From Adineta vaga (lineage: Eukaryota; Animalia; Rotifera): DNA of 64,000 nucleotides. The position numbers and the translations under genes are program-made. Below the pieces are notes generated by a model that was not told the DNA's origin, did no database searches, and saw only the letters and a list, made by a program, of their open reading frames with translations. This document shows, one piece after another, positions 1-6,427 of this stretch (position 1 is its first letter; each line of letters opens with the position of its first letter). The stretch covers positions 14,384,001-14,448,000 of the forward strand of contig CP075494.1 of NCBI GenBank assembly GCA_021613535.1, given 5' to 3'.

Positions 1-53
1 GTATAAGATCATTCGTTGTATACAATACAAGTTCATATCATAAAATTTCACGT

Positions 54-590
54 ATGACATTACGAAAATTAAAAATCGAACCATTGACAAAAGAAGCTTT
101 TGCTTCATTTGGTGATGTTATTGAAACTGATCAACGGCCTTTTCGAATGATTAATAATGGTTCAACTCGTCGTTATCATTCTCTAGCTCAAGTAGAAACA
201 GCATATCCTGCTGATGGTGATCGGGCTATAATCAGTATTTTTCGTGCTCAAACAACAAAAATGCCATGTGTGATTCGAATGCTTGAACGACATCCATTGG
301 GTAGTCAAGCTTTTATACCATTACTTGGTCGACCATCTCTTATTGTTGTTGCTCCACCAACGAATCCTTCTATCAATGATGACAAACCACAACTTGATCT
401 TATACGTGCATTTATTACAAATGGTAAACAAGGAATCAATTATAGTCGAGGAACATGGCATCATCCCGTATTAGCGATTGGAAATGAAGAAGATGATTTA
501 CTTGTTGTTGATCGTGAAGGTACAGGTAATAATTGTGATGAACATTTCTTTGAAGAACATGAACACATGATTCTCGATTATCAATCTTGA
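54..590 (+). CDS. allA: Ureidoglycolate lyase (urea-releasing), bacterial AllA type; intronless; candidate horizontal acquisition
   Basis: 178 aa with family motifs IEPLTKEAF.FGDVIET, MINNGSTRRYH, MLERHPLGSQAFIPL, GINY.RG.WHHP, LVVDR.G.GNNCDE. Closely resembles Pseudomonas-type AllA from memory. AATAAA at 646-651 and 653-658. Confidence 0.93.
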   Translation: MTLRKLKIEPLTKEAFASFGDVIETDQRPFRMINNGSTRRYHSLAQVETAYPADGDRAIISIFRAQTTKMPCVIRMLERHPLGSQAFIPLLGRPSLIVVAPPTNPSINDDKPQLDLIRAFITNGKQGINYSRGTWHHPVLAIGNEEDDLLVVDREGTGNNCDEHFFEEHEHMILDYQS

Positions 591-698
591 ATCTAACATT
601 GAAAATTTTTCAAGAAACTAAAACTTTGATTTTTATCCGAAAGAAAATAAAGAATAAAACCAATCTAAACTAGCAAAGTTCAAAGATTTATATGGAAA

Positions 699-2923
699 TT
701 ATTGTTGAGCTTTTAATTGTCGACGTCGACGATGTAGAATAAGTTCAGTATATCCATTTGGTTGTTTATCACCCTCAAGTATTAATTCCAATGCAGCTTG
801 AAAAGCGATATTTTTATCGAAATCATTTGCCATTGATTCATATTCAGAACTATCAGCATTTTGTCGATCGACAATTTCAGCCATTCGTTTCATTGTTTCT
901 TCTACTTGTTGTTTTGTAATTAATCCATGTCGTAACCAATTAGCCATTAATTGACTGGAAATTCTTAATGTTGCTCGATCTTCCATCATTCCAATATCAT
1001 CAATATCGGGTACTTTCGAACAACCTATACCTTGATCAATCCAACGGACAACATAACCAAGTATACTTTGAGCATTATTATCTAATTCATGTTGGATTTC
1101 TTCATCTGTAAGATTTGTTGTTAATACTGGAATTGTTAATAAATCATCAAGATAATCTTTGGATAATTCAGTTGATGATAATAATTCTGTTTGACGAGCA
1201 AATACATCTATTTGATGATAATGTAAAGCATGAAGTGTAGCAGCAGTTGGTGATGGCACCCATGCACATGTTGCTCCTGTTTGAAGATGATTTATTTTTT
1301 GTTGGATCATCAATGCCATCTTATCTGGTATTGCCCACATTCCTTTTCCAATTTGTGCTCGTTTTGAAAGACCACATTTTAATCCAATCGTCACATTATT
1401 CTTTTCGTAAGCATTTAACCATTTCGTTTCTTTCATTTGTACTTTACGTACGAGAGGACCTGCTTCCATTGATGTGTGAATTTCATCACCAGTCCGATCA
1501 AGAAATCCAGTATTGATAAATACTAAACGATCTTTTACTTCTCGAATACATGCATGAAGATTGACGGTTGTACGACGTTCTTCATCCATAACACCGATTT
1601 TAAGTGTAGAACGAGGTAATTTTAATAGATCTTCAACACGATTAAATAAACATGCAGTAAAGGCAACTTCTTCAGGACCATGTTGTTTTGGTTTAACAAT
1701 ATAAATTGAACGTTTACGAGTATTTCTTATTGCTTCTATTGATTTTTCATTAAGATCATGTAAGGCAATTAAAGTTGTAATAAGAGCATCAAGTATACCT
1801 TCAGGTATTTCTTCGTTATCTTGATTTAAAATAGTATCCGTATACAATAAATGACCAACATGACGAATAAATAGAAGCGATCGACCAGGTAAACGTAATT
1901 CCGTACCAGCTTTTGAGATATAAACTCGATCTGAATTTAATTTTCGACGAATTTTTTCTTTTCCTTTAAGAAATTCTGCTTCTAAATTTCCTTTCATTAA
2001 ACCCAACCAATTTCTATATAATTCTACTTTATCATTTGCATCAACAGCGGCAACAGAATCTTCACAATCAACAATTGTCGTTAATGCTGATTCAATAAAA
2101 ATATCTTTAATACCAGTTGAATCAATTTGAAGTTCAATATGAAGACCATGATGTATGAAAAGAATTACAGAAGGTTTATTCAATTCACCTTGATATCCAA
2201 GAAATTGATCAGAACAAAGAAGTTGAGTGATACTTCCATCTTGTAAAGTGATCTAATCGATAGAAATTATTTCATTTGCATATCATCAGATGAAACTTAT
2301 CTTACTTTGAGGTCACCATTTTCAATATGATATCGTACAGCATCTTTATATGATGCACGATTCATCAAAGGAATAGATTGATCAAGAAATTGTTGTGTAT
2401 AAGCAATTACTTTATCACCACGTTTTTTATTATATTTACTAGTTTTTTCACAACCATCACTTTCTGGAATGACATCAGTACCATATAATGCATCATACAA
2501 TGATCCCCAACGAGCATTTGCAGCATTGAGAGCAAATCGAGCATTCATCAGTGGAACGACAAGTTGTGGTGCAGCTTGAAGAGCGATTTCATCATCGACA
2601 TTTGTTGTTGTAATTTGAAATTCTTCATCATGATGACGTACAGATGATAAATAACCAATATCGAATAGAAACTTTTTATATGTTTCAATATCGGTATATT
2701 TTCCTGGATGGGTTCGATGCCATTCATCAATTTGTGTTTGTAACGAATCGCGTATTTGTAAAAGTTTACGATTTTCAGGTGATAAATCAGTTATGATGGA
2801 CTCTGCACCATTCCAAAATGTTTCTCGATCAATATTGATACCTGGTAAAACTTCTTCATTGACAAAATTAAAAAGAATTTTAGCAACTTTTAAATTTCCA
2901 ATGTGTACACGTTCATTCGTCAT
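699..2923 (-). CDS. glcB: Malate synthase G, two exons (2923-2306, 2252-699), ~723 aa; bacterial-type gene with a spliceosomal intron
   Basis: Motifs [108 protein letters not shown]...[12 protein letters not shown]. Removing the GTAAG...TTAG intron at 2305-2253 joins ORFs 2297..3007 and 699..2183 in frame (...GDLK|ITLQDGS...). Confidence 0.95.
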
Positions 2924-3171
2924 GATATATTTTTCTTTTATCCGATCATATTTATTTGCTTGCAAAAGATAGAAGCACAGCAGTATTAGCACTAAATATA
3001 CACACACTATCGAAAAGAAAAATCGTCAATTTGTCGATTACTGTAAGAAACGAATTAATATGGTATCAGATGTCGCTATATTCAATGATGTGAATGCACC
3101 TTAGTGTTTATTGAGAGTATTCAAAAATAAAACTTTTCTTTTCTTTTTTTTTTTTTTTATCAAAAATTAAC

Positions 3172-3591
3172 TCAAAGCAAAATCCATAGAGCAGTAAATA
3201 TAATCACGAGAGAAACCACGGATGGCAATGTATATGTTCCTGTGGAAGTTCGAGCAGCACTTCCTCCACATTGACTGTATCCATTATTTCTCACGTATAA
3301 AGTATTACTATCAGGACTGAGTGAATAAGTAATTTGTGAACCTCGAGTTCCTATTGTAGAAAATGAATAACTGTTTGGATTTGAAAATGTTGTTGTAGAT
3401 CTTGATGAACCACATCCTTGTGTATCCGATGAAAAGATCAAATTTGAACCGGATGCTTTCACAGCTAAACTACCCGTATAACAACAACAATGATTTACTT
3501 TACATTGATTATCCCATTTGTATGTGCCAGCCCATCTTTGCATCGTAACAACTGATATCAGTAAACAGATTATGAATAGTATGGTATTCAT
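3172..3591 (-). CDS. Small secreted, probably GPI-anchored, Cys-containing protein of unknown function
   Basis: 139 aa intronless ORF with hydrophobic N-terminal signal, C..CCC motif, Ser/Thr-rich body and hydrophobic C-terminal tail (VVSLVIIFTALWILL). Confidence 0.7.
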   Translation of the reverse strand: MNTILFIICLLISVVTMQRWAGTYKWDNQCKVNHCCCYTGSLAVKASGSNLIFSSDTQGCGSSRSTTTFSNPNSYSFSTIGTRGSQITYSLSPDSNTLYVRNNGYSQCGGSAARTSTGTYTLPSVVSLVIIFTALWILL

Positions 3592-4190
3592 TTGATCTAT
3601 ATCAATAGGATAAGAAATGAATGTGCATTCGATTGTATTTTGTGATTAAATCTTATATCTCTCGTTGATTTATTTCGTATTAAAAGAAGACAAATGTTGT
3701 TTTAGTCTGTTATATTGACAAAACGAAAATGCACGTATATGACTATGGCAATTCAATCAAATTGAAACGCCCATGTAATTATAAAACAAATCGAAAATAT
3801 CAATAAAAATAATGAAGGAGGTTTTATCGAATCATCCAGCAAACAAAAACGTTTCTTCAATAGGGAATTAAATATCATATGTACAAATTATTTTTTTTAA
3901 CTTTTCATTGATTTGAAGAGAAGTTTAATGTACCATATTGATACTCTTCATATGTTTTTCTTATTGAAAACAAGTCCACCCCCACATATTTCTATTTCAC
4001 TGGCATCAGATGTTTTCATAAATCAAGTCTAAAAAACAATGATCATTCTTCTCGTCAACATGTTGCACATTACGCCCTAGAAATTCAACATCAATGAAGT
4101 GAAATATTATCGTCATTCATACGAACAAACGAATATATAAACTAAACAAAGATTGCTTCTTAAACAATATCATTTCTAAACCAAAATAAA

Positions 4191-5107
4191 ATGGCTTCCG
4201 GACAAGGAAATGGTGGTATGTCGTTAAGTATGAAATTCATTCGATTATTAATTATTCTTTTGAATTTAACATTTGTTATCATTGGTGGCTTATTCCTTGC
4301 TATCGGTATTTTCGTTATGAAAGATCCAAAAATGCAACAATTACGTCCTTTACTTAGTCCAGATATTACAGTAAAATATTCACAAAGTTTATCAACTATT
4401 GAAGTATCTGCCATTATACTGATTGTTATTGGTGGAATTTTATTAGCAATTGGATTTCTTGGTAAGAGAATGAATGAAAGTGAACTTCTCATGTACTGAT
4501 TTCATTTAATTTAGGTTGTTGTGGTGCAGTAAAAGGTTTTCGATTTTTACATCTTCTCTATGCAATTATCATCGGTGGAATTATTCTCGCTGAAATTGCA
4601 TTTGTTGTTGTTTATATTGTTTATCAAAATCGATTTAAAACTGAATTTGCCAATAAACTTCGTGAATCAATTGTAAAATATTATGTTGGCCCATCAATAA
4701 ATAATTCCACATCTGTCAATCCCATTTCACTATCATGGGATATAGTACAATTCAATCTTCAATGTTGTGGAGCAGTAAACAAAAGCGATTATGCAAATAC
4801 AACAAGTTGGAATCGAACAAATCCTTATCAACCAACTACAAATTTGACTGTTCCTTTTACATGTTGTCCATTAAGTGCAACGAAAAATTGGAATGGTATA
4901 CCAGCAAATATGAGTGAAGCAAATACATGTGCAACAACTGGTGTGAATGTTTATTCTCAAGGTTGTTATGATCGTTTGATTGATTTATTATTTTCTTATA
5001 AAAATTATGTTATTATTGGTGGTGCGATTATTGGTGCTGTTGAAATTTTTGCTTTCTTATTTGCAATATTATTATTTTGTCGTAAAGATCATTATGATAG
5101 TTTGTAA
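4191..5107 (+). CDS. Tetraspanin (exons 4191-4461, 4515-5107)
   Basis: Four TM segments, GFLG|CCGA across the intron 4462-4514, LQCCG motif in the large loop, VPFTCC and GCYD motifs. Confidence 0.92.
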
Positions 5108-5256
5108 AATCTATAGTATTAATAAAACTAATTGTATCTATAAGATTTGTGTTTACATAATGATTTCTCTTAGAGGATCGAACAATCAATATGAAATTCT
5201 TAATAAATCTACAACGATGAAAAGAAAAAGGTCAAAAATGTCTTTTTGTTTTTCTT

Positions 5257-5812
5257 CTATAAACAACCAATGGATACAAGAGGACATTGATAATCAACTT
5301 CATTGCTATTCTCTTTAACAATTTCATGAAATGGACGTGCTTGAATACCACATGTTCGTTTGAGTATTTCAACAGTTGCATCTTGATTGAATGATAATTC
5401 ATGATAAGGCATTTGTTTATAATGATTAGAAATATTCGTTTGATTTAGAAAGAAAACATACGTATGACCATGAACAAATGCTCGATAACAAAGTGGATTA
5501 TCTAAGAGCTAAGAATTAGTATTGACAATGTAAATATTCATTTGAATTACCTGGAAATGTATGTTCAATCATAAGATTTTCTACTTTTGGTGGAATACCT
5601 TTTAATGTACACCGAACAACAAATGTTATATTGAATGGTTTTGTATGATTGTTAACTGCAACTGCAGTTGATGTTTCAATAACATCACCATAAATTACAA
5701 GTGGTGATTGAGAAAGTTTTATTGAAAATGGTATTGCATCTTGACATATTGGTGAACCAATACTTATGAAGATTACTGAACAAAGTACAATAAGAATCGT
5801 TGATCTTGACAT
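5257..5812 (-). CDS. Small secreted protein, NtA/TIMP-like (agrin N-terminal) OB-fold candidate (exons 5812-5551, 5501-5257)
   Basis: Signal peptide followed by C....F..KL..SPLVIYGDV ... F.VRCTLKG ... C......GHTYVFFL. A 49-bp GT-AG intron at 5550-5502 restores the frame to a TAG at 5257. Fold assignment is by eye. Confidence 0.6.
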
Positions 5813-6427
5813 GATCAAATTCATAAATAAAAATATGATGAACGAAACAAGTATATATATATATATATATATACATCTATTCTTGTCTTATCTGATTCTT
5901 TTTCTTTCGAAACACTTGAACTATTTGCACCGTAGCTTGATAGTATATTCTCGTCTGTCTGTTATGTTTTAATCAGAAGAGTTACGTGTCTATATTATAT
6001 CATTTATTCACAACAACATACATATGTACTACACTCTTGAAGAATTCACTTCACTAACAGTTGTAGATTTGGTAGGAATCTTTTATAAAGCTTCGTTTCG
6101 AACCAAAACATCCATTCTCATAATAAAATGTAAGATATCGATTTTCCACCATATATATCAACATAGTGAGTATATTTATTTTTCATTTACCTTTTTTTTT
6201 CAATATTATATAAAACTGATGTCTTTTAGAATTCATTATTTTGTTGATGAAAGTATTTCCAAAGTGCAGCAAGTAAATCAGAATTCTATAAATGATTATG
6301 AAAATGAACATCTTATCACATCAGAAGAAGCAGTTACAAAACTTTCAGTACACATTGATAACATTACACATTATGTTCTTTTCTAAAGAAATATGTTGCC
6401 GTGATTTAGATTTTTTCGAAGATAATT

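Follow-up and report, generated by a model that had tools for sequence, protein, structure and literature searches.

Why do two genes of bacterial type, encoding successive enzymes of purine breakdown, lie tail-to-tail in the chromosome of an animal, and do they function there as a unit? The question is raised by the first 3 kb of the window analyzed here, a stretch of 64,000 nucleotides (nt) from chromosome 5 of the bdelloid rotifer Adineta vaga (G000:C5:14384001-14448000, in an assembly of six contigs and 100.8 Mb), where allA, encoding a ureidoglycolate lyase, adjoins glcB, encoding a malate synthase G (MSG). The explanation that we favor, and consider quite probable, is that allA and glcB are a domesticated pair derived from Pseudomonadales that most likely ends a bacterial-type route of ureide degradation. 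Positions below are those of the window unless another sequence is named. The pair is arranged as follows.

54..590, plus strand: allA, ureidoglycolate lyase, 178 amino acids (aa), intronless, with its stop codon at 588-590; PF04115, E = 4.8e-57.
591..698, no strand: spacer of 108 bp separating the two stop codons at the convergent 3' ends, from direct reading of the sequence.
699..2252, minus strand: glcB exon 2, 517 aa plus the stop codon at 699-701, encoding the rest of the MSG insertion, the TIM barrel and the C-terminal domain; PF01274, E = 4.5e-61, and PF20659, E = 5e-24.
2253..2305, minus strand: spliceosomal intron of glcB, 53 nt, GT..AG, phase 0, from sequence reading and an RNA-contig joint.
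2306..2923, minus strand: glcB exon 1, 206 aa, encoding the N-terminal domain (MS_N) and the start of the MSG_insertion domain; PF20656, E = 6.4e-13, and PF20658, E = 3.3e-12.

The stop codons read at 588-590 and 699-701 bear out the original prediction, which described the two genes as tail-to-tail with 108 bp between the stops, and what it observed at this locus is confirmed. Together the glcB exons encode 723 aa, which is the length of the A. vaga protein deposited at NCBI for this locus (I4U23_026559; P0121). Database searches, trees and family scans were run with each of the two exons individually. The genome contains a single copy of allA and two copies of glcB. From these copy numbers and the genome size, a gene inserted at random would come to lie within 1 kb of a glcB with a probability of approximately 4e-5, so adjacency by chance is unlikely.

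The assignment of both proteins to their families is clear. AllA matches PF04115 with 192.6 bits (cut-off 23) over positions 2-158 of the 162 in the profile, and it passes the NCBIfam equivalog model NF002949 with 247.3 bits against a cut-off of 230. Its best match among solved structures is 2BDR (E = 8.8e-66), which we take to be the AllA protein of Pseudomonas putida (PA1514-type), and the alignment to 2BDR and 1XSR is nearly gapless. An alignment of ten rotifer and Pseudomonadaceae sequences has 77 invariant columns, which are conserved columns and not individually mapped catalytic residues. A protein of this family would be expected to release urea and glyoxylate from (S)-ureidoglycolate.

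GlcB consists of the four domains of malate synthase G, including the alpha-beta insertion specific to the G form, with MS_N and MSG_insertion in exon 1 and the TIM barrel and MS_C in exon 2. The protein P0121 shows all four. Exon 2 alone scores 877 bits with NF002825 (cut-off 565); the 810 bits it obtains with TIGR01345 are short of 989, the cut-off for the whole protein, as the scored part comprises just 517 of 723 residues. Exon 2 also aligns to the P. aeruginosa MSG structure 5VFB with E = 1.3e-222, and the active-site motifs (the Mg-binding acidic residues, the catalytic Asp and the Arg) are kept in this alignment. The residues are assigned to motifs after the E. coli and M. tuberculosis structures, and we take 5VFB and 5OAS to be Pseudomonas proteins. 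GlcB is predicted to have malate synthase activity. By family assignment allA and glcB encode consecutive steps, from ureidoglycolate to glyoxylate to malate, as had been proposed.

To place the two genes we searched 5.8 billion proteins and judged the named sources in the best 120 matches of each search. After bdelloids, the first matches are Pseudomonas proteins both for AllA (67% identity) and for exon 2 of GlcB (64% identity). No named non-rotifer source within the best 120 matches of either search is eukaryotic, and many of these matches carry no source name. In the AllA tree the rotifers form one clade (support 100/100) inside the Pseudomonadaceae (100/99); a more broadly sampled tree makes them the sister group of Pseudomonas (89/88). 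The rotifer clade in the GlcB tree (support 100) is composed of two paralogue groups, each with Adineta and Rotaria, and joins the Pseudomonadaceae with a value of 95 in the Shimodaira-Hasegawa-like approximate likelihood ratio test (SH-aLRT). A GlcB tree constrained to unite rotifers and Pseudomonadaceae exceeds the result of the unconstrained quick search by 19 log-likelihood (lnL) units. The quick searches gave starred branches that were not upheld by approximately unbiased (AU) tests, and the exact placement of the donor is therefore proposed with moderate confidence. Judged by sequence comparison, allA and glcB are foreign and have their nearest non-rotifer relatives in the Pseudomonadaceae. 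Vertical eukaryotic ancestry is ruled out by the search matches and by the trees of both proteins, neither of which nests with vertically inherited eukaryotic homologues; both proteins fall among bacteria, as the original prediction had it.

Both genes are transcribed in the rotifer, glcB is spliced, and both are under purifying selection. The RNA evidence consists of unstranded assembled contigs, the depth of which cannot rank genes. The joint from 2252 to 2306 that results from splicing of glcB is present in RNA contigs of two runs (X15 and X16). RNA contigs cover allA, and those over glcB exon 1 extend to 2980-2997; coverage is absent from the intergenic regions 2981-3170 and 3653-4047. The GC content at third codon positions (GC3) is 12-14% in allA and glcB and 12% in the adjoining tetraspanin gene, compared with 80% in a Pseudomonas allA. 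The ratio of nonsynonymous to synonymous substitution rates (dN/dS) is 0.04-0.15 for allA among A. vaga, Adineta steineri and Rotaria magnacalcarata, and 0.07-0.29 for exon 2 of glcB, the latter from A. vaga and A. steineri only. The intron, the host-like GC3, the splicing and the purifying selection show that these bacterial genes have been domesticated.

RNA contigs (records 1, 8 and 13; unstranded) bridge the 108-bp spacer from allA into the 3' end of glcB. The convergent transcripts of the two genes, as far as unstranded contigs can indicate, may overlap in the spacer. Over positions 1-1077 and 258 nt upstream of them, contigs pass through allA and the spacer into the 3' 380 nt of glcB. 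An RNA-contig joint from 552 to 1171 has just 21 matching letters on one side and was treated as a chimeric or unrelated contig.

The arrangement is not peculiar to A. vaga. The convergent allA-glcB pair also occurs in A. steineri, in R. magnacalcarata and on a 483-kb contig (L174) of a more divergent bdelloid, and in all three it is followed by a small open reading frame (ORF) and a gene with a Pfam tetraspanin match. The adjacency is consequently kept across bdelloid genera. Overall, four bdelloid genomes have allA and glcB side by side, and the cluster is limited to these two genes, which are not homologous to each other and encode consecutive steps. The corresponding features in A. vaga are these.

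3172..3591, minus strand: small expressed ORF of 139 aa without a Pfam match; RNA contigs span 3171-3652, and it is syntenic in other bdelloids.
4191..5107, plus strand: tetraspanin gene with a spliced 53-nt intron at 4461-4513, the splice joint being found in three RNA runs; it marks the animal flank.

The tetraspanin introns at 4461-4513 and 5502-5550 are spliced in RNA contigs, and the surrounding chromosome is eukaryotic and intron-rich, as described before. On the left the flank in A. vaga consists of a tetraspanin gene and a multi-exon CAP gene. Every sampled word of positions 1-6000 was found in DNA runs from several studies, and in independent bdelloid assemblies the pair sits between animal genes; an unlinked contaminant is thereby excluded. 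The product of the 139-aa ORF is hydrophobic at both termini and contains several cysteines; ORFs of 123-132 aa occupy the matching place in A. steineri and R. magnacalcarata.

A second glcB (P0149) is located on chromosome 2. The block from approximately -17.6 kb to +14.5 kb around the pair is collinear, in inverted orientation, with C2:2,950,120-2,974,560, where the right-hand tetraspanin gene has an ohnologue and where no counterpart of the 139-aa ORF was detected. The chromosome-2 glcB has an intron at the same exon boundary as the copy beside allA, and this is likewise the case in A. steineri and on L174. Because the intron is shared by both ohnologues, glcB would have been domesticated before the duplication into collinear blocks. 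The chromosome-5 block is approximately 3.5 kb longer at window positions -11139 to -6367 (L018/L022) than its counterpart at C2:2967123-2968389.

The remaining genes of the pathway are dispersed. The original prediction had pointed to the sequence left of position 1 as a place to look for further purine genes; none was found in 18 kb left of the window, where the flank is made up of the tetraspanin and CAP genes, the rest of the pathway being encoded on chromosomes 1, 3 and 4. The gene for uricase is on chromosome 1 (C1). On chromosome 4 two tandem intronless genes, identical at 470 of 473 residues, encode fusions of the PuuE allantoinase with 2-oxo-4-hydroxy-4-carboxy-5-ureidoimidazoline (OHCU) decarboxylase (UraD).

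C4:4701086-4701562 and C4:4704967-4705443 (L178:1486-2904, minus strand, and L179): PuuE-UraD fusion genes; TIGR03212 and TIGR03164.

The fusion scores 532 bits with TIGR03212 and 204 bits with TIGR03164, both above the cut-off. The same architecture occurs in clusters of Pseudomonadota, and the order of the domains is that of the puuE and uraD genes in Pseudomonas. An intronless allantoicase gene of 332 aa lies on chromosome 3 at C3:12333796-12334791 (L013:1012-2007, minus strand). Its closest matches after bdelloids come not from animals but from the Alphaproteobacteria Lacibacterium (68%), Dongiaceae (64%) and Sneathiella (approximately 60%), and those in Pseudomonas are 56-58% identical; it appears to be a third gene of this pathway with a foreign origin, its donor differing from that of allA and glcB. 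On these family assignments every step from OHCU to malate is represented by a gene of bacterial type, and these genes would come from at least two donor classes. The sole match to the urease alpha subunit in the genome, at C2:13457464-13457742 (L180), has three in-frame stops and may be a decayed gene or a set of exons read through introns.

Isocitrate lyase is encoded at two loci, one on chromosome 5 at 3.84 Mb and one on chromosome 3. At the former (C5:3843799-3846722; L003-L005, L009-L012) the isocitrate lyase exons are followed approximately 1 kb downstream, on the same strand, by exons of an A-type malate synthase, and the two may form a bifunctional gene as in nematodes. The earlier suggestion that glyoxylate is recovered here without needing isocitrate lyase is moot, since the enzyme is encoded twice and one of the loci lies directly upstream of an A-type malate synthase.

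The history that we propose begins, before the divergence of Adineta and Rotaria, with the acquisition of allA and glcB from Pseudomonadaceae or closely related Pseudomonadales. The glcB intron would predate the duplication from which the ohnologues on chromosomes 5 and 2 arose. The ureide route would run on enzymes of bacterial type, from the PuuE-OHCU decarboxylase fusion (chromosome 4) through the allantoicase (chromosome 3) to AllA and GlcB, and these last two would carry out the final two steps of purine (ureide) degradation in bdelloids. A purine-to-malate flux, and any benefit of the linkage itself, are what we infer from this arrangement.

Several observations weigh against this explanation. 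On chromosome 2, the ohnologous block contains a glcB without an allA. No allA relic was detected beside the chromosome-2 glcB (best E = 2, which is noise), a result that is uninformative at this divergence, and the absence is compatible with either early loss or later insertion. In R. magnacalcarata the glcB beside allA is a pseudogene (L026:8772-11100, also L027 and L028) that has lost most of exon 1 and whose exon 2 contains four in-frame stops; the region of the catalytic motifs is altered and the N-terminal 148 residues are unrecognizable. Alignments at this pseudogene match closely in three assemblies of the species, and the allA beside it is intact (84% identical). The linkage of allA and glcB is dispensable. 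Since isocitrate lyase is present in the genome, GlcB may work in the glyoxylate cycle or in glycolate metabolism and not in purine catabolism. Searched exon by exon, canonical allantoinase (TIGR03178) gave only weak matches. The best reaches 103 bits where the cut-off is 358, and no Pfam family matches the 273-aa ORF that underlies it. Finally, a canonical peroxisomal tripeptide of the SKL type is missing from the C termini of all four bacterial-type proteins. The idea of a two-step mini-cluster is accordingly upheld as to conserved adjacency and consecutive steps, but the pair is not a fixed unit, as the chromosome-2 glcB without allA and the R. magnacalcarata pseudogene demonstrate. More generally, the original prediction was largely right about the origin and the likely chemistry of the genes, whereas it presented the module as more unified than it is and went too far on the lack of isocitrate lyase.

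How the two genes came to be neighbors can be addressed from bacterial gene order. In none of 80 Pseudomonas loci was glcB found within 10 kb of allA, and in a complete genome of P. mediterranea the two genes are more than 1 Mb apart. They are also not neighbors in 19 Gammaproteobacteria with both genes from a class-level sample, and the two closest metagenomic bacterial contigs show no linkage. Inheritance of the adjacency from Pseudomonas gene order is ruled out for the sampled genomes, and the closest bacterial relatives do not show the adjacency and orientation expected of an intact donor operon. These results are consistent with a history in which allA and glcB, unlinked in Pseudomonas-like donors, were integrated separately. 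They could have arrived at different times or as pieces of a single lysed donor that were joined at one break, and chance or mild selection would then have kept them linked. Within this scenario allA may have landed beside the chromosome-5 glcB after the genome duplication. The chromosome-2 block, with a glcB that has the same intron and no allA, speaks for it, as does the presence of an intron in glcB and of none in allA. In addition, the chromosome-5 block gained other DNA after the duplication (the approximately 3.5 kb at -11139 to -6367), and the allantoicase from a different donor class indicates that repeated acquisition did happen. However, the second gene would have had to land approximately 100 bp from a functionally related gene of the same donor family, for which the chance is the 4e-5 given above if landing is random. 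We regard two integrations as nearly an even proposition, leaning slightly against.

The alternative is that the genes arrived together. In 2 of 301 sampled Pseudomonadales genomes, Salinispirillum marinum and a second genome (G314), allA immediately precedes a co-oriented glcB.

L184:8941-13203: allA-glcB operon of Salinispirillum marinum.
L183:7960-11224: allA-glcB operon of the second genome.

In both operons glcB is followed by an RraA-like gene, and xdhC and uraD adjoin; in one of the two genomes the allantoicase gene alc directly precedes allA. A single fragment with an operon like that of S. marinum could have been transferred, followed by inversion of one gene and, later, loss of allA on chromosome 2. 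Besides the existence of such operons, this history draws on the maximum-likelihood (ML) tree of AllA, in which the operon lineage is the next branch outside the clade of rotifers and Pseudomonas, and on the presence of both genes before the split of Adineta and Rotaria. A grouping of rotifers with the operon lineage is not rejected by AU tests for either AllA (p = 0.58, the constrained tree being 3.4 lnL better than the free search) or GlcB (p = 0.35), and either one transfer or two may account for the pair, as the original prediction allowed. Against a single transfer, the ML trees place both rotifer genes with Pseudomonas proper, where the genes are unlinked, and the operon-linked glcB falls in a different clade of GlcB paralogues (support 100). 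Moreover, the bacterial genes are co-directional and the rotifer genes convergent, so that an extra inversion is needed, and a loss of allA on chromosome 2 is required as well. On balance we find a single co-transfer somewhat unlikely. The second clade of GlcB paralogues also holds an extra glcB of a Stutzerimonas-like genome (G203), and second copies in four Pseudomonas genomes probably belong to it, by identity only (59-61%).

A broader version of these events can be formulated for the pathway as a whole. Bdelloids would have rebuilt lower purine degradation, from OHCU through allantoin, allantoate, ureidoglycolate and glyoxylate to malate, with genes from at least two classes of bacterial donor. 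AllA would have replaced the malate-synthase-like enzyme of animals, and the pair would be the remnant of a transferred purine operon, linked since before the bdelloid radiation. We offer this only tentatively and think it unlikely in its entirety.

It is also conceivable that the two enzymes are adjacent yet uncoupled. GlcB would then act with isocitrate lyase in a glyoxylate shunt for the use of lipid or acetate, for example around desiccation, AllA would simply free urea nitrogen, and their neighborhood would be a historical accident. The two isocitrate lyase loci, the second glcB away from allA, and the decay in R. magnacalcarata of the glcB next to an intact allA are all consistent with such a division. 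However, glyoxylate is a shared metabolite regardless of its source, and the same pairing has been selected both as a bacterial operon and as a yeast cluster (PMC10120013). The linkage is also kept in three further bdelloid genomes, representing two named genera and a divergent lineage. For these reasons uncoupled function seems to us quite improbable as an alternative to the Pseudomonadales-derived pair at the end of a ureide route.

The chance that bacterial contamination or mis-assembly was joined to rotifer DNA is negligible, as it has nothing in its favor but the strong bacterial similarity of both proteins and is ruled out by the spliced intron in glcB and the same intron in its chromosome-2 ohnologue, the host GC3, the identical locus and flanks in independent assemblies of three other bdelloids, and the DNA runs from several studies that contain all sampled words of 1-6000.

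The foreign metabolic genes of bdelloids are mostly known as catalogue entries, and only a few have been assembled into a coherent pathway that can be tested. We see the locus as a well-supported fresh example of this known phenomenon, together with a hypothesis at the level of a pathway. Taken with the allantoicase and the PuuE-UraD fusions, the pair suggests gene transfer as the means by which an entire catabolic segment was replaced in an animal, and this segment would include a step whose animal enzyme was identified only in 2023. The locus is a system for asking whether transferred pathways are assembled by repeated acquisition or by operon capture, and whether purine carbon enters the tricarboxylic acid cycle in an animal able to survive starvation and desiccation.

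Purine metabolism heads the KEGG pathways represented by foreign transcripts of Adineta ricciae, with glyoxylate metabolism included as well (Boschetti et al. 2012, PMC3499245). That catalogue documents the same phenomenon without this pair, its linkage, its donors or a reconstruction of the pathway (PMC3499245), and in a literature search we found no paper on the bdelloid allA-glcB pair. The ureidoglycolate lyase of animals is a malate-synthase-like protein (Dembech et al. 2023, PMC10120013). It catalyzes the same end-of-pathway reaction as AllA with an unrelated fold (not PF04115), and bdelloids may cover this step with the bacterial AllA instead of the animal enzyme. The statement that most animals lack malate synthase is subject to the caveat that many carry this malate-synthase-like lyase (PMC10120013). 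An A-type homologue from A. ricciae has been placed in the group of true malate synthases (PMC10120013).

The rotifer enzymes themselves closely resemble those of Pseudomonas. AllA belongs to the same family and length class as Pseudomonas AllA (2BDR), with which it is 67-72% identical, but it has lineage-specific insertions of 2, 6 and 1 residues and its gene is AT-rich. The gene order also differs, as the rotifer allA is beside glcB and that of Pseudomonas is downstream of puuE-uraD-alc. Similarly, GlcB shares four domains with the malate synthase G of P. aeruginosa (5VFB/5OAS) and is 64-66% identical to it over exon 2 with the active-site motifs kept. Unlike the P. aeruginosa gene, the rotifer glcB has a 53-nt spliceosomal intron, is present as two ohnologues and has the codon composition of the host.

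The arrangement of the genes has a counterpart in the bacterial alc-allA-glcB-RraA-like operon, in which the same producer and consumer of glyoxylate, AllA and MSG, are immediate neighbors. However, the genes of the operon are co-directional and co-transcribed, whereas those of the rotifer are convergent with separate transcripts, and the ML trees put the rotifer genes nearer to Pseudomonas than to operons of the S. marinum type, although not decisively. A glcB gene is also found in a purine operon of Paraglaciecola arctica (cited in PMC10120013). Among eukaryotes, the DAL cluster of yeast joins the malate synthase DAL7 with the ureidoglycolate lyase DAL3 (PMC10120013). Like the rotifer pair, it is a eukaryotic combination of an AllA-type lyase and a malate synthase for the use of allantoin. 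However, the yeast cluster has an A-type malate synthase, contains more genes and was formed from relocated native genes (PMC10120013), whereas the rotifer locus consists of two genes of bacterial origin in an animal.

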